Positions 22,271 to 38,339 of a DNA stretch of 64,000 nucleotides are shown here, in pieces (position 1 is the first letter of the stretch; each line of letters begins with the position of its first letter). A program made the position numbers and the translations under genes. The stretch comes from Auanema rhodensis. Its lineage: Eukaryota > Animalia > Nematoda. Under the pieces are notes generated by a model. It was not told the origin of the DNA. It searched no databases and worked only from the letters and a program-made list of their open reading frames with translations. The stretch is taken from assembly GCA_964057225.1 (NCBI GenBank), contig CAXKVF010000074.1, positions 682,001 through 746,000 of the forward strand. The letters are read 5' to 3'.

Positions 22271-22445
22271 TGTCAACGTCTCTTTTTTAAGCAGGGGTTT
22301 GTTCAGTTTGAGAAACTGACCTCTCTTTAAAAGCTAACCAGGTGCGGTGGAACTTAGAAATAAGTCAAGCCCGTTCTGGAAGTCAGAGGTAACTAGCACC
22401 CGATCCGTATGGCTAATGCCCATAAGATTCAATGGTGAAGTAACA
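22271..22445 (-). other. Conserved 3'-UTR core, copy 2 (candidate structured RNA element)
   Basis: About 88% identical by manual alignment over ~109 nt (22337-22445) to 37547-37655, with further short shared motifs down to 22271; flanks align poorly. Confidence 0.6.
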
Positions 22446-31500: not shown

Positions 31501-32751
31501 ATTTACGTGAACTTTAATTTATGCTAATTAAATGTACATGTGATGTGCACTTGGTATGTAACTCGCTTCACGTGAAAGATGAAGAGATGCGGTTTTCAAA
31601 ATTAGATTCCCCATGTCCATATTAGTCTAAAAACAAATTTTTATTGATATTGCTTCATGGTAACCATGACTTTGAAATTTACGTGAACTTTAATTTATGC
31701 TAATTAAATGTACACGTGATGTGCACTTGGTATGTAACTCGCTTCACGTGAAAGATAAAGAGATGCGGTTTTCAAAATTAGATTCCCCATATCCATATTA
31801 GTTTAAAAACAAATTTTTATTGATATTGGTGCATGGTAACCATGACTTTGAAATTTACGTGAACTTTAATTTATGCTAATTAAATGTACACGTGATGTGC
31901 ACTTGGTATGTAACTCGCTTCACGTGAAAGATAAAGAGATGCGGTTTTCAAAATTAGATTCCCCATGTCCATATTAGTCTAAAAACAAATTTTCATTGAT
32001 ATTGCTTCATGGTAACCATGACTTTGAAATTTCCGTGAACTTTAATTTATGCTAATTAAATGTACACGTGATGTGCACTTGGTATGTAACTCGCTTCACG
32101 GGAAAGATAAAGAGATGCGGTTTTCAAAATTAGATTCCCCATGTCCATATTAGTCTAAAAACAAATTTTTATTGATATTGCTTCATGGTAACCATGACTT
32201 TGAAATTTACTTGAACTTTAATTTATGCTAATTAAATGTACACGTGATGTGCACTTGGTATGTAACTCGCTTCACGTGAAAGATGAAAAGATGCGGTTTT
32301 CAAAATTAGATTCCCCATGTCCATATTAGTCTAAAAACAAATTTTTATTGATATTGGTGCATGGTAACCATGACTTTGAAATTTACGTGAACTTTAATTT
32401 ATGCTAATTAAATGTACACGTGATGTGCACTTGGTATGTAACTCGCTTCACGTGAAAGATAAAGAGATGCGGTTTTCAAAATTAGATTCCCCATGTCCAT
32501 ATTAGTTTAAAAACAATTTTTTATTGATATTGGTGCATGGTAACCATGACTTTGAAATTTACGTGAACTTTAATTTATGCTAATTAAATGTACACGTGAT
32601 GTGCACTTGGTATGTAACTCGCTTCACGTGAAAGATAAAGAGATGCGGTTTTCAAAATTAGATTCCCCATATCCATATTAGTTTAAAAACAAATTTTTAT
32701 TGATATTGGTGCATGGTAACCATGACTTTGAAATTTACGTGAACTTTAATT
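22562..32751. repeat. 176-bp tandem satellite array, segment 2 (~58 monomers)
   Basis: Same monomer and orientation; register preserved at 22621/25261/27901/30541. Confidence 0.99.
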
Positions 32752-33299
32752 GACCTCCCACTCGTCAGTTGACCTCCCACTCGTCACAGTTGACCTCCCA
32801 CTCGTCTCAGTTGACCTCCCACTCGTCAGTTGACCTCCCACTCGTCAGTTGACCTCCCACTTGTCAGTTGACCTCCCTCACTCGTCAGTTGACCTCCCTC
32901 ACTCGTCAGTTGACCTCCCTCACTCGTCAGTTGACCTCCCACTCGTCAGTTGACCTCCCACTCGTCAGTTGACCTCCCACTCGTCAGTTGACCTCCCTCA
33001 CTCGTCAGTTGACCTCCCACACTCGTCAGTTGACCTCCCTCACTCGTCAGTTGACCTCCCTCACTCGTCAGTTGACCTCCCACACTCGTCAGTTGACCTC
33101 CCTCACTCGTCAGTTGACCTCTCACTCGTCAGTTGACCTCCCTCACTCGTCAGTTGACCTCCCACTCGTCAGTTGACCTCCCTCACTCGTCAGTTGACCT
33201 CCCTCACTCGTCAGTTGACCTCCCTGACTCGTCAGTTGACCTCCCTCACTCGTCAGTTGACCTCCCACTCGTCAGTTGACCTCCCACTCGTCAGTTGAC
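32751..33299 (+). repeat. 5'-terminal minisatellite of the LINE: 27 units of 19/21 bp (tgacctccc[tc/ac]actcgtcagt)
   Basis: Units counted from 32751 to 33295 plus a final tgac; length variants differ by 2-nt insertions (tc, ac, ca, ct). Confidence 0.97.
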
Positions 33300-33499
33300 T
33301 TCCGCTGTTTGGATCCGGATCCGTTTCTGTCAAGGAAATTTTCGTCGGACTGGCTTTGTCAAGGTGCGCTCTCTTTCGTATCGCATTTTAGTTTTATCAT
33401 TATTTCCTTTCTCTCGTATTTGTTTCTTTTTTATTTTCCACTTCAGTGTTTATTCTTATTCTTTCTTACTTCCCTTCTTTTACTCCCTCGTTTTTCAAT

Positions 33500-34561
33500 A
33501 TGTCTTTCGTGACTAATGATTTTCTTACAAATGCTCTTCAAAATTTCTCAAAGTCTCTCGAGAACTCTTTTTCAAAATTGTCAAATGATATAAAAAATGA
33601 GCTTAACTGTATGAAAATTAGTATCACGTCGCATGAGGCTCGCTTAAAAACTATCGAAACGGATTTCAAATCCCGCTTAGATAAGTTAGAGCAAACTTTT
33701 AACTCATTTCAAACCACTAGCAACCTTAACTCTACCTGTGTTCCAACTTTTTCCCCACTCAATGTAGCATGTCATTTTCAAAAATTACGATCAGAGGAGA
33801 CAAAGTACCTCTACCGTGCCAAAAGAGCCCTTTGGTTTCGAGTGCCATTAAATTCAACAGAATTTCCAACTGAACCTCTGTTGTTACTAAAACTTATTAT
33901 CGAGAAATCTCAGGACACCACTTTGTCTTCTTTGATCGATAGCAATCAAATTACTATTGCACGTTCAACTCTCAAATCTAATTCCCCTGGCCCTCTCATA
34001 ATTACGTGTCCATCGGTAGATTTACGTGACAAGATTATCCAAGTTATCAAATTCAATAAATCAAAATGCTTCGATTTCCTCTCAAAAACGTTTTTGCGAC
34101 GAGATTATCTCCCCTTCGAAATTGAACTGGAGAAAAACTTGCGAAAAGAAGCAAAAATCAAGAATGAAAATAACACTGAAAAGACTTTTCTTGTACGGGA
34201 TCTCAAAATTATTGAAGTCCCCCGTAAATCTACCAATGTTACTTCGCATGCCATAAACACTCTCTCTGTCACTGTGGACACTCAACCAGCTGAAACCCCT
34301 TCAGTAGTTGATGCCGTTTGCAGTTCAATCTTAAAACCAATTTCTTCTCTCATCTCCAGCCCCCCTCGTAAATCTGGTAGACCCAGTCGGTCTAACAATA
34401 GGCAGGTGTCTGTACCAACAGATAAAAATCATTCAATAAGCCCAAGAAGGAGAAAAAATCCGCCTCGGGTAGTTAAACCAACTGGACCTAATACCAGATC
34501 TATGAATAGTCCTTCTGCATCATCTTCTGTTGTTTTGTCCAATAACGGGTCCTTTCGTTGA
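33500..34561 (+). CDS. LINE ORF1 protein (353 aa from first ATG): N-terminal coiled coil, probable RRM/CTD-like nucleic-acid-binding core, basic S/P/R-rich tail
   Basis: Open frame 33446-34561 with first ATG at 33500 (MSFVTN). Heptad-like segment LQNFSKSLENSFSKLSNDIKNEL...RLDKLEQTF; GPLIITCPS..LRDKII and FLRRDY...E..LRKEAK...VRDLKI motifs; lies directly upstream of ORF2. No CCHC knuckle visible. Confidence 0.88.
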   Translation: MSFVTNDFLTNALQNFSKSLENSFSKLSNDIKNELNCMKISITSHEARLKTIETDFKSRLDKLEQTFNSFQTTSNLNSTCVPTFSPLNVACHFQKLRSEETKYLYRAKRALWFRVPLNSTEFPTEPLLLLKLIIEKSQDTTLSSLIDSNQITIARSTLKSNSPGPLIITCPSVDLRDKIIQVIKFNKSKCFDFLSKTFLRRDYLPFEIELEKNLRKEAKIKNENNTEKTFLVRDLKIIEVPRKSTNVTSHAINTLSVTVDTQPAETPSVVDAVCSSILKPISSLISSPPRKSGRPSRSNNRQVSVPTDKNHSISPRRRKNPPRVVKPTGPNTRSMNSPSASSSVVLSNNGSFR

Positions 34562-34565
34562 TCCA

Positions 34566-37394
34566 ATGTTATCGTCAACACCTGTTCTCGTCTCTAACCA
34601 CACTTACATTTCTGTTCACTGTTACAATGCACGCTCAATTCTCAACAAACTTCATCTTCTCCCAGTTATCATCTCTCCCAATTCTCCTGATATAATTGCT
34701 ATATCAGAGTCCTGGCTTTACCCCCAATTTAACACTAATCTTCTTCCGTTAGGTGACATCTATAATATCCTCAGGGCTGATAGATGTTCATCACGGGGTG
34801 GTGGTGTACTACTTTTCATCAAAAAACATATTACTTTTCGTCTTCTTTCCTGCTCTTGTAATTCATCTACCATACAGTTTATAAATATTCTCATCACATC
34901 TTTCAATTCTATTTTTTCTGTTTGTTACCGCTCTCCATCATCATCCAGTTTAGATTTCTCAAACTATCTTTGTGATCTACAAAATCATTTAGTTAATCGG
35001 TCTCTCTATCTCACTGGTGATCTTAATTTCCCTAAAATAAACTGGGATCTTGGTATATGTTCTCAACCTACTCCTTCTAGTAGAATTCTACTCCAATTTC
35101 TCAATCACAATTGTCTAAACCAGCTAGTAAATTTTCCTACTAGAGGTGAAAATATTCTTGACTATATAATTACAAATAACGTTCGTTGTGTCAACAATAT
35201 CAAGCGATCTGGTCCACTTGGAGCTTCGGATCATTTTTCCATCACCTTTCATATACTTTCAAAATCTGAAAATTTTCATCTACAAGATTTACATAGTGCT
35301 GAATCCACATCTCTCTCCATGTTATCAGACCGCAATTTCCTTTTGGCTGATTATGAACGTATCAATAGGCAACTGGTCAACATCGACTTCTGTTCTGAAC
35401 TTTCAGGTCTTACTCCACTCCAATCGTATTCAAAGTTTATCTCTATTCTACATTCAATCATTGACATTTATGTTCCTAAAAAACAACCGAGGAAAAATAA
35501 AAAAGCGGATCGTAACATTGCAAAACTCAGAAATCAAATTAACAGGCTAAGTTGCTCTTTATATCTATCTGACGAGATTCGCCGTAAAAATCTTTCAGTA
35601 AAATTGGACAAACTAATAAAAATCAAATGTGCTTTAGAGGAAGAGCGTATTGCTGCCTTAAAAAACTCCAAGCTTTTTTATCGTTTTTGTAAGGCCCGAT
35701 TAAATGGTAAAACATCTGACATTCCAAACCTCACTGTCAACAATGTGTCAGTTTCTTTAGATATTGATAAAGTGTCAGCATTTGCCGAGGTTTTCACGGT
35801 TTCTCCTCTTTCTCCTCTTGTCTCTCAGGAAAACACTCATGTTTCCGTCTCTTCTTCTTCCAGTCATACCATTGATTTCATGGATATAACACCTGAATTG
35901 GTCTACAAAACTCTTCATAGTCTTCCACTCAGGGTTTCCACATCTCCGGATGGTATTCCATATTACTTTCTTAAACAATGTGCTTTTACTCTGGCTAATC
36001 CATTAGCTTTTATTTTTCACAATTTGTTAGTTACCTCAACTTGTCCTCCTGATTGGAAGTTAGCCTGGATTCGTCCCATTTTCAAAACGGGCCGACCTGA
36101 AAATCCAAGTAACTACCGCCCAATTTCACTCACTTCCAGTCTTTCAAAAATCTTTGAACGTATAATACGTACTCCACTTCTTAATTTTGGTATTTCCAAT
36201 GGTGCCATATCTCAGAATCAACACGCCTTCCTTCCTAAAAGAAGCACTGTTTCTGCAATTCTGAGTAGCCACATCTCTTTCAGATCATCATTGGACTGTA
36301 ATACTCCGGTTTTTGTAGCTTATATCGACTTTTCAAAAGCCTTGGATCTTATACAACATTCTACTCTTTTTTCAAAACTCAAGTCCATTGGTATTCAAGG
36401 CCCACTTCATTCCTTTCTCCAAAGTTTCATCTCTGGTAGGTTTTTTTCAGTTATGGTCAATAATTCCTTATCACCACCTAAACAACTCACTTGTGGTGTA
36501 CCACAAGGTACAGTTCTTGGTCCTCTGTTGTTTTTATTTTACATAAATGACATAACATCCAATTTTCCTAATGATGTCAGCTCCATTCTCTATGCAGATG
36601 ATTTGAAGCTCTACAGCAAAAACCCTACTAGTTTACAGCGGGCTCTTGATCAATTAAAATTATGGTGCGACTCAAACGGGATGGCCGTTAACATCTCTAA
36701 ATCTAAAATAATGGTTATGTCAAATAAACCAATTAGTAATCCTGAAAACTTCGCTTTCACTTTTGGTAACTTTAACCTATCTTCAGTAGATTGTTACAAA
36801 GATCTTGGAGTATTCACAGATTACAATCTCTCCTTCTCAAACCACATAAACAAAATCACAAGTGAAGCAGCAAAAAAATGTAAAATAATTTTACGTTGTT
36901 TCTACTCCAAATCGCCTTCTCTTATGTACAACTTATTCTGTACTTACATAAGACCAATATTGGAATATGCTTCTATTATCTGGTCCCCACAAGATTCTAA
37001 AGACAAAGACCGGATTGAATATGTTCAAAAAAAGTTTCTGCGCGCAGTTTTCATGCGCTCAGGATCTAAAATGAGCTATGAAGATCAACTGTCTTTGTTA
37101 GGGGGGCAAAAGTTATTTTTCAGAAGACTAGTTTTCGATTTAATTTTTTATTTTAACCAAATAAAACAACCAATTTCAGAGAATACTTTGAAAATTTTTA
37201 AGCTCAAAAAATTCACACACTCACTAAGGCGTCACGAATGGACTGTGGATTTTCCAAACGTCCAGAAGACTCAAACTAGAAGAGGTATCGAGTACAGAGC
37301 CATAGAACTCTGGAATTCAATACCATCAAACATTGTGAGTCTTGAAAAAGCTCCCAAATTTCGCAAACATCTTCAACTTTTCCTTAGCGATTAG
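34566..37394 (+). CDS. LINE ORF2 protein (942 aa from first ATG): apurinic-like endonuclease + reverse transcriptase
   Basis: EN motifs YNARS, DIIAISESWL, RGGGVLL, GDLNFP, PTRGENILD, SDH. RT motifs PDGI, NYRPISLTS, IDFSKALD, GVPQGTVLGPLLF, YADD (36591-36602), YKDLGV. CR1-type C-terminus YIRPILEYAS..WSP, IEYVQKK, LWNSIP. No RNase H or CCHC seen. Confidence 0.97.
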   Translation: MLSSTPVLVSNHTYISVHCYNARSILNKLHLLPVIISPNSPDIIAISESWLYPQFNTNLLPLGDIYNILRADRCSSRGGGVLLFIKKHITFRLLSCSCNSSTIQFINILITSFNSIFSVCYRSPSSSSLDFSNYLCDLQNHLVNRSLYLTGDLNFPKINWDLGICSQPTPSSRILLQFLNHNCLNQLVNFPTRGENILDYIITNNVRCVNNIKRSGPLGASDHFSITFHILSKSENFHLQDLHSAESTSLSMLSDRNFLLADYERINRQLVNIDFCSELSGLTPLQSYSKFISILHSIIDIYVPKKQPRKNKKADRNIAKLRNQINRLSCSLYLSDEIRRKNLSVKLDKLIKIKCALEEERIAALKNSKLFYRFCKARLNGKTSDIPNLTVNNVSVSLDIDKVSAFAEVFTVSPLSPLVSQENTHVSVSSSSSHTIDFMDITPELVYKTLHSLPLRVSTSPDGIPYYFLKQCAFTLANPLAFIFHNLLVTSTCPPDWKLAWIRPIFKTGRPENPSNYRPISLTSSLSKIFERIIRTPLLNFGISNGAISQNQHAFLPKRSTVSAILSSHISFRSSLDCNTPVFVAYIDFSKALDLIQHSTLFSKLKSIGIQGPLHSFLQSFISGRFFSVMVNNSLSPPKQLTCGVPQGTVLGPLLFLFYINDITSNFPNDVSSILYADDLKLYSKNPTSLQRALDQLKLWCDSNGMAVNISKSKIMVMSNKPISNPENFAFTFGNFNLSSVDCYKDLGVFTDYNLSFSNHINKITSEAAKKCKIILRCFYSKSPSLMYNLFCTYIRPILEYASIIWSPQDSKDKDRIEYVQKKFLRAVFMRSGSKMSYEDQLSLLGGQKLFFRRLVFDLIFYFNQIKQPISENTLKIFKLKKFTHSLRRHEWTVDFPNVQKTQTRRGIEYRAIELWNSIPSNIVSLEKAPKFRKHLQLFLSD

Positions 37395-37546
37395 CTTGCA
37401 CTTTCATTATTAATGTTTTTCGTCTGCTTATGATATTTTGTTCTCTAATTATTATTTCAATATGTCTTCTACAAATATCTATGCAAACTATGTTCTTCAT
37501 GTATCATTTTTTGTTTTCAACCACATCCTTGTTCCCTTTGCTACAA

Positions 37547-37727
37547 TGTTACTTCACCATGGACTCTATAGGCATTAGCCATACGAATCTGGTGATAGTT
37601 ACCTCTGATTACCAGAACGGGCTCGACTTTTTCTCTAAGTTCCACCGCACCTGGTAAAAGTAAAAATGAGGTCAGGTCATATTTTTTGAACTGAACAAAT
37701 CCCTTGTTTACCAAGGATGGGTTGACA
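37547..37727 (+). other. Conserved 3'-UTR core, copy 1 (candidate structured RNA element)
   Basis: Relatively GC-rich island in an AT-rich UTR, conserved with 22271-22445 (-); shared potential pairings tctg/caga, actt/aagt, agcc/ggct, ggtg/cacc, acctc/gaggt. Confidence 0.6.
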
Positions 37728-37922
37728 ACTATGACACATAGATTTACTTGTTTAGAATATATATTTTCTACTGACATAATTGATTCAATAATTATTCTTA
37801 TCTCTATACAATTAATGTTTTCATGTCAATCAATTTATATAATCATGTTCATATTGTAAGGAACTTCTTTTATCCACTTTCTTTTTTCAAAACTGCTATT
37901 GTTATAACCTGTGATAAAGAAC

Positions 37923-37928
37923 AATAAA
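37923..37928 (+). promoter_or_regulatory. AATAAA polyadenylation-like signal at LINE 3' end
   Basis: aataaa 7 nt before the element end; conserved in the related short insert. Confidence 0.6.
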
Positions 37929-38339
37929 CCTTGACTAATTTATGCTAATTAAATGTACACGTGATGTGCACTTGGTATGTAACTCGCTTCACGTGAAAGA
38001 TGAAGAGATGCGGTTTTCAAAATCAGATTCCCCATGTCCATATTAGTCTAAAAACAAATTTTTATTGATATTGGTGCATGGTAACCATGACTTTGAAATT
38101 TACGTGAACTTTAATTTATTCTAATTAAATGTACATGTGATGTGCACTTGGTATGTAACTCGCTTCACGTGAAAGATGAAGAGATGCGGTTTTCAAAATT
38201 AGATTCCCCATGTCCATATTAGTCTAAAAACAAATTTTTATTGATATTGGTTCATGGTAACCATGACTTTGAAATTTACGTGAACTTTAATTTATGCTAA
38301 TTAAATGTACACGTGATGTGCACTTGGTATGTAACTCGC

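Follow-up and report, generated by a model that had tools for sequence, protein, structure and literature searches.

Host element and the island in its 3' UTR

The window analysed here is a stretch of 64,000 nt from the nematode Auanema rhodensis (contig CAXKVF010000074.1, positions 682,001 to 746,000 of the forward strand), and positions are counted from its first letter. It contains a full-length non-LTR retrotransposon, copy A, with two open reading frames and a 5' array of short units (Table 1). The 3' UTR of copy A extends to 37935, where the surrounding 176-bp satellite resumes. The element combines an apurinic-type endonuclease with a reverse transcriptase and lacks RNase H, as is characteristic of the CR1/L2 group. 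The closest database relatives of ORF2 are environmental proteins of at most 35% identity. Distant relatives carry a Lipase_GDSL_2 or a weak PHD match, and ORF1 of copy A has no match in Pfam. The 19/21-bp unit of the 5' array, TTGACCTCCCACTCGTCAG, includes TGACCTC, which is the complement of a GAGGTCA in the 3' UTR (37668-37674, at the border of helix H3 and arm III described below). By our own estimate about 0.17 chance matches are expected, and this 7-nt match between array (32750-33303) and island is probably not meaningful. The last bases of copy A, CTTGAC, resemble the start of the array unit.

An earlier note on this DNA had pointed to a block of about 109 nt in the 3' UTR of the LINE that recurs with roughly 88% identity on the opposite strand of the window. 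This similarity was confirmed. When 37547-37655 of copy A is aligned to the reverse complement of 22337-22445, 98 of the 108 aligned positions are identical (90.7%) and two 1-nt indels are required. Identity is about 89% once the indels are counted. The shared motifs said to follow the block were located in both copies, with GAGGTCAG at 37668 in copy A and 22316 in copy B, AACTGAACAAA at 37689 and 22298, and GTTGACA at 37721 and 22271, respectively. The surrounding UTR had been described as barely alignable. Indeed, a single identity measure gives 0.59 upstream and 0.57 downstream compared to 0.90 in the island, and values of 0.57-0.59 represent the noise floor of this measure for AT-rich DNA here. 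Copy B is 5'-truncated, and in other copies of its subfamily C the end of ORF2 is found upstream of the island. The conserved unit proper spans 37547-37698, with conservation reaching 37727 only among the closest subfamilies. In copy A, 152 nt separate the ORF2 stop from the island, and 237 nt lie between the island and the end of the element.

Table 1. Features of the LINE, its structured island and the helices of the consensus fold, in positions of the window.
Feature	Position	Strand	Evidence or remark
5' array of 19/21-bp units, copy A	32750-33303		
ORF1 of copy A, 371 aa	33446-34561	+	ORF list; no Pfam match
ORF2 of copy A, apurinic-type endonuclease and reverse transcriptase	34530-37394	+	Pfam RVT_1 1.1e-31, Exo_endo_phos_2 9.2e-8
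Structured island, copy A, four-way junction of about 152 nt, 3' UTR of full-length LINE	37547-37698	+	model R1, 173.8 bits
Island, copy B (5'-truncated, subfamily C, inserted in satellite)	22299-22445	-	model R1, 143.1 bits
P1 closing helix	37547-37550 (UGUU) with 37694-37697 (AACA)	+	3 of 4 pairs changed on both sides
Arm I, whole	37551-37599	+	
Arm I, H1	37551-37558 with 37591-37599, one bulge	+	6 of 8 pairs changed on both sides
Arm I, H2 hairpin, loop AUUA	37562-37573 with 37578-37589	+	7 of 11 pairs changed on both sides
Arm II, whole	37601-37672	+	
Arm II, H3	37601-37606 with 37667-37672	+	6 of 6 pairs changed on both sides
Arm II, H4	37609-37615 with 37651-37657	+	5 of 7 pairs changed on both sides
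Arm II, H5a, 3 bp	37618-37620 with 37645-37647	+	invariant
Arm II, H5b	37625-37629 with 37637-37641	+	2 of 5 pairs changed on both sides
Arm III hairpin, CAG...CUG base, variable distal stem of 5-7 bp in all	37673-37693	+	3 of 3 base pairs changed on both sides
3'-terminal module	37845-37935	+	ATGTTCATATTGTAAGGAAC 37845-37864, AACCTGTGATAAAGAACAATAAAC 37906-37929, then CTTGAC; element end 37935

Distribution of the island across subfamilies

A BLAST-type search of the 181-Mb genome recovered the island in four subfamilies, A to D, at 77-100% identity. The covariance model R1, built from 15 sequences with a hand-checked structure, produced at least 149 genome matches, every one of full model length and scoring between 55.8 and 174.5 bits. 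Following this search, 41 short islands and six 1.9-kb contexts were fetched, and at least 11 subfamilies (A to K) are represented among the collected islands. The end of ORF2 is recognisable in subfamilies A-D and G-K as an open frame, 183-370 codons long, that stops 89-210 nt upstream of the island. The sampled copy of subfamily F is decayed. Across subfamilies, the island lies about 190-285 nt from the 3' end of the element.

Conservation along the elements is strongly focused. Mean pairwise identity among ten subfamilies tops at 0.62-0.69 over 37566-37645, compared to 0.40-0.59 in the 3' region of ORF2 and 0.11-0.32 in the remaining UTR. A conservation peak in a multi-copy alignment was among the checks proposed earlier, and the island provides such a peak at a level above the coding region. 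A second, smaller peak is found at the 3' terminus.

Some copies of the island are regularly spaced, with distances of 1351/1703 bp (G000:C4:2668488-2673038), 1272 bp (C79:475418-476851) or about 3260 bp (C3:10704578-10714748; 3.26-3.5 kb on the contig). Such regular spacing implies that truncated LINE tails were amplified inside higher-order tandem repeats. Beyond this genome, the ten contigs carrying the nearest ORF2 relatives (at most 35% identity) contain no match to model R1 or R2, and a 3' flank longer than 300 nt is present in a single contig of the ten. Metagenome contigs were also scanned with a pattern, and the seven matches are all chance by model score, including a partially aligning one that is GC-rich. 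Because the contigs searched hold almost no 3' flank, the lack of a match outside the genome says little.

A covarying four-way junction

The consensus fold consists of the closing helix P1 and three arms, with the helices at the junction separated by at most one unpaired base. P1 is invariant in subfamilies A-D, and CAUU/AAUG and other pairs take its place in distant subfamilies. H3 varies between subfamilies, with forms including ACCUC/GAGGU, AUCUC/GAGAU, UUCAU/AUGAA, ACUAC/GUAGU and AUCAC/GUGAU. Arm III forms a hairpin of differing sequence in the single-sequence folds of A, B, D, E, F and H. The segments AGAACGGGCU and CCG(C/U)ACCU, which make up H5a and the internal loops of arm II, are near-invariant in all subfamilies, and so are the CAUUAG top and the UA stem of the H2 hairpin. 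Helices that change yet still pair around fixed letters are the pattern of a scaffold that would present specific bases to a partner.

Several stems proposed in the earlier note are recovered in this fold, with acctc/gaggt corresponding to H3, ggtg paired with the 5' cacc to H1 and actt/aagt to H5b, all three of which covary. Two further proposals found no support. The hairpin tctg-attac-caga is lost in subfamilies B and D, and its caga is part of H4. The AGCC of the proposed agcc/ggct pairing already serves in the covarying H2 hairpin as its 3' strand.

Support for the fold comes from the alignment A3 (57 sequences, 56 distinct rows), which was fitted to the model so that its pair counts lean towards the model: standard pairs are found in 91.8% of cells compared to 28-39% after sliding the 3' partners by 1-3 columns, and both sides have changed in 32 of 47 pairs, with contributions from every helix but H5a. 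The covariation score of A3 is 0.436 versus at most 0.092 for slid partners and 0.191 for shuffles, and 0 of 500 shuffles reach 0.436. We also scanned all 8,646 possible antiparallel stacks of 4 bp in A3, requiring a minimum of 88% standard pairs and two or more pairs with changes on both sides for a stack to pass. This leaves only 12 stacks, of which 11 are helices of the model and one pairs H5b in another register (columns 84-87 with 102-105). None of the passing stacks among the 8,646 is a crossing (pseudoknot) stack, and the pseudoknot-like crossing suggested earlier is hence not borne out at the level of helices.

Analyses without the fitted alignment agree in part. On a sequence-only MAFFT alignment of 18 representatives, RNAalifold recovered H2, H4, H5a and H5b with 12 of 23 pairs compensated. 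H1, H3, P1 and arm III were not recovered from this alignment, because MAFFT misaligns the rewritten strands. The complete four-way architecture appears in single-sequence minimum-energy folds of A, B, D, E, F and H. The folds of C, G, I, J and K depart partly from the model and keep parts of it. Folding-energy z-scores are modest and range from -0.1 to -4.4. Mutual information and single-column covariation over all column pairs did not separate the model pairs from others, as shared ancestry among few clades dominates such scans of single pairs and makes them uninformative. The number of independent events is limited by about 11 lineages, so that cell counts overstate the evidence. Within this limit, the covariation pattern is clear at the level of helices.

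Comparison of the genomic copies thus shows a fold kept by natural selection through matched helix changes over at least 11 diverged subfamilies. As in R2-type 3' UTRs, a multi-helix fold with compensatory changes is combined with low sequence identity. The broader proposal, a structured RNA of several helices lying far upstream of the terminus in the LINE 3' UTR, has therefore held up in the form of a covarying four-way junction on the sense strand.

The similarity could alternatively have arisen without any RNA function, if the island had been passed between families as a tract of gene conversion or recombination, or as a patch that mutates slowly. Such an origin might explain why F and G share 82% identity in the island with an ORF2 region at noise level (the F frame being decayed and ORF2 nucleotide identity saturated), and many copies reside in homogenising tandem arrays. 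However, the 11 subfamilies diverge in a graded manner, with scores as low as 55.8 bits, and matched changes rewrite the helices while the loops stay fixed. Gene conversion cannot make compensatory pairs such as those seen in A3 (32 of 47), which largely refutes this origin, the possibility that the earlier note had asked to be checked. We consider a tract or patch devoid of RNA function very unlikely.

Strand, coding potential and known RNA families

The paired cells contain G.U 117 times and A.C 48 times. An excess of G.U over A.C indicates that the sense strand, and hence the LINE's own RNA, folds. This excess also argues against the island acting as double-stranded DNA, for instance as a promoter or protein-binding site. 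A short encoded peptide would be the related alternative, as a single frame stays open over most of the island in 7 of 11 subfamilies. The same frame is interrupted by stops in F, H, I and J, though, and three of these have an open ORF2 end upstream. Variable columns of the island are distributed over the codon positions as 36/40/39 without an excess at third positions. A codon-type substitution pattern, which had been named as a check, is hence absent. Subfamilies further differ by 1-nt and 2-nt indels in the island. By our reading, nearly all island differences between A and D change the amino acid, and the sole clean synonymous change between the two is half of a compensated base pair. These stops, indels and substitutions led us to reject a coding island, and they bear out the earlier claim of non-coding constraint. 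Both a peptide and a duplex-DNA function appear extremely improbable.

No known RNA family was recognised in the island. A cmscan against Rfam 15 over 37300-38000 on both strands gave 0 matches at E up to 10, with self-cleaving ribozymes and the tRNA-like and SRP-like RNAs among the families covered, and none of six other subfamily loci had a match at the Rfam gathering score. The literature, queried both by topic and with sequence strings, yielded no description of the fold, and string matches were by chance only and mostly in unrelated papers. A tRNA or tRNA-like structure was rejected given that ARAGORN reported 0 genes in 37300-38000. A tandem array of SL1-like spliced-leader RNA genes was observed at G000:C3:6741531-7099372, with a spacing in multiples of about 252 bp. 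Its matches cover the full model at 54-62 bits, below the Rfam cut-off of 75, and the array is in keeping with a nematode genome.

Non-LTR elements are known to contain ribozymes, with twister variants described from Schistosoma (PMC8501958) and one of the HDV-like type from L1Tc (PMC3383444). The compact multi-helix fold with invariant unpaired nucleotides might hence be a new self-cleaving ribozyme or a processing signal at which the transcript is cut. The junction, however, is almost without unpaired nucleotides, and the invariant bases are located in the internal loops of one arm. A cut at the island would also separate the transcript from the 3' terminal module that priming requires. The LINE ribozymes known so far are located at the 5' end. 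Along with the empty Rfam search, these observations make self-cleavage or transcript processing decidedly unlikely. Instead of being a simple docking site for a protein, the four-way junction could also belong to a new functional RNA class, either as a self-processing ribozyme or as an RNA that recruits a host factor by imitating a host RNA. Its active or mimicking core would then consist of the invariant loops of arm II, and a whole group of nematode LINEs would share the fold. We regard a new class of this kind as unlikely.

The 3' terminus and insertion sites

Separate from the island, the terminal blocks ATGTTCATATTGTAAGGAAC and AACCTGTGATAAAGAACAATAAAC are common to subfamilies A-D, F, G and I-K. 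A weak RNAalifold prediction pairs ATGTTCATATTGTAAGGAAC with AACCTGTGATAAAGAACAATAAAC around a variable loop. The two blocks may represent a classical terminal recognition structure. Tails of (AAAC)n or (AAAT)n close the elements of subfamilies I, J and K, and the terminus of copy A, ...AATAAACCTTGAC, has no repeat run.

Insertion sites were read from 3' junctions in the window (32741-32752 and 37930-37945) and at loci L001-L039. Copies of A and B, as well as one sampled K copy, are mostly inserted at ...CTTTAA/TTTATGC of the 176-bp satellite, with the slash marking the junction. Copies of C and D and one sampled I copy are found in the opposite orientation at /ACGTGTACA of the satellite, a junction also written /ACGTGTACATTT. 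A few A and B copies occupy other sites beginning with TAA or TTA, and copy A has a possible target duplication of TAA/TAATT. The sampled copies of F, H and J lie elsewhere. A search for a copy of the target site inside the UTR of copy A was negative, as no word of at least 11 nt is shared with the satellite, and the one such word in ORF1 is a chance match. Fixed positions in the satellite could reflect LINEs with site preference or amplified satellite blocks already carrying the insert. The island is common to subfamilies with different insertion sites, which suggests that it serves a common step, such as RNP assembly or template choice, rather than target choice.

Two sampled copies have unusual neighbours. 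A copy of subfamily G (L131:1530-1615, 1760-1862; G000:C3:10703378-10705323) abuts a 5S-like tandem repeat, for which the 5S rRNA match has 29 bits (E 6.5e-4) and is below the Rfam cut-off. At locus L015 (G000:C4:14916193-14919379), a B copy outside the satellite is followed on the opposite strand by a sequence that by eye resembles part of a tRNA gene, ctaccaactgagctatcgacgg.

A putative docking module for the element's own protein

The island is very probably a part of the RNA that the element needs for copying itself, judging from how its fold has been maintained. More specifically, we suggest with a probability of roughly 0.55 that it acts as a docking module for the element's own protein, which would recognise its own RNA for target-primed reverse transcription (TPRT). 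The invariant loops, positioned by the helices, would form the docking site, and the protein binding there would most likely be ORF2p. The freshly translated protein might thereby seize the RNA that encodes it and take this RNA as template for TPRT. The terminal blocks, along with the short-repeat tail, would probably position the start of cDNA synthesis. We favour docking because of four precedents, found in L2-clade LINEs, R2, SART1 and CR1. Recognition of a structured LINE 3' UTR by the element's own protein is already established.

In the L2-clade LINEs UnaL2 and ZfL2-1/2, the cognate ORF2p binds a stem-loop of the 3' tail (PMC4176376). The likeness to our elements includes the location of a structure in the 3' UTR, with sequence kept in loops and structure kept in stems, as well as ends made of short repeats instead of poly(A), which here are the (AAAC)n and (AAAT)n tails of I, J and K. 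In contrast, UnaL2 and ZfL2 have a single hairpin at the terminus, whereas a four-way junction of about 150 nt lies 190-285 nt upstream here, and separate conserved terminal blocks are present in addition. The R2 protein of Bombyx and Drosophila selectively binds its structured 3' UTR as the template for TPRT (PMC11194090). R2 shares with our elements a multi-helix fold of a few hundred nt or less and specific repeated targets. R2 differs in having a single ORF with a restriction-like endonuclease and 28S rDNA as its target, compared to two ORFs, Exo_endo_phos and a satellite target here, and there is no relation by sequence or Rfam.

Further precedents point in the same direction. In the summary that PMC7265360 gives with reference to Osanai 2004, SART1 proteins recognise the SART1 3' UTR in trans, and this UTR contains internal stem-loops. 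SART1 of the R1 clade is similar to our elements in having recognition structures inside a long 3' UTR and a tandem-repeat target. The poly(A) and separate stem-loops of SART1 set it apart from the closed four-way junction. The CR1 3' UTR carries a conserved hairpin that was proposed as the RT recognition site, together with an octamer microsatellite (PMC4316615). A 3' UTR structure conserved across subfamilies and a microsatellite tail are thus shared with CR1. The hairpin of CR1 is single and terminal and belongs to an amniote lineage, however, and the likeness is one of structure.

A truly selected fold might also act at another step of the life cycle. Candidate steps include packaging by ORF1p, nuclear export or localisation, protection of the non-polyadenylated RNA from decay, or bicistronic translation. 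The covariation fits such roles equally well, since it gives no indication of the binding partner. The known RT-recognition hairpins of stringent LINEs sit at the terminus. The island is instead internal, 237 nt from the end of copy A, and the separate terminal module could be the entry site of the RT. The terminal blocks ATGTTCATATTGTAAGGAAC/AACCTGTGATAAAGAACAATAAAC alone could perform RT recognition, which weighs against docking at the island. Protection from decay meets its own difficulties, as at a distance of 190-285 nt the island cannot protect the 3' end of the RNA against 3' exonucleases, and no U-rich triple-helix loop is apparent by eye. Moreover, our literature search found no precedent for any of these roles in LINE 3' UTRs. 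We consider a role in one of these other steps possible but less likely, and docking of the element's own protein remains our preferred explanation.

What sets the island apart is that about 150 nt fold into a closed four-way junction and that this junction is internal, beside a terminal module. How a LINE protein chooses its own RNA is, to our knowledge, well worked out only for few elements (R2, L2-type, SART1, L1). The at least 11 natural variants in one genome constitute a mutational map of the parts that must pair and of the bases that are kept. The island is also a clear construct for work on binding, TPRT and retrotransposition, and a candidate for a new RNA family in Rfam. Should template specificity reside in the module, cargo RNAs could be directed to the LINE enzyme by tagging them with it. 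On the docking reading, a LINE that ends in short repeats need not depend on a terminal hairpin alone for its recognition.
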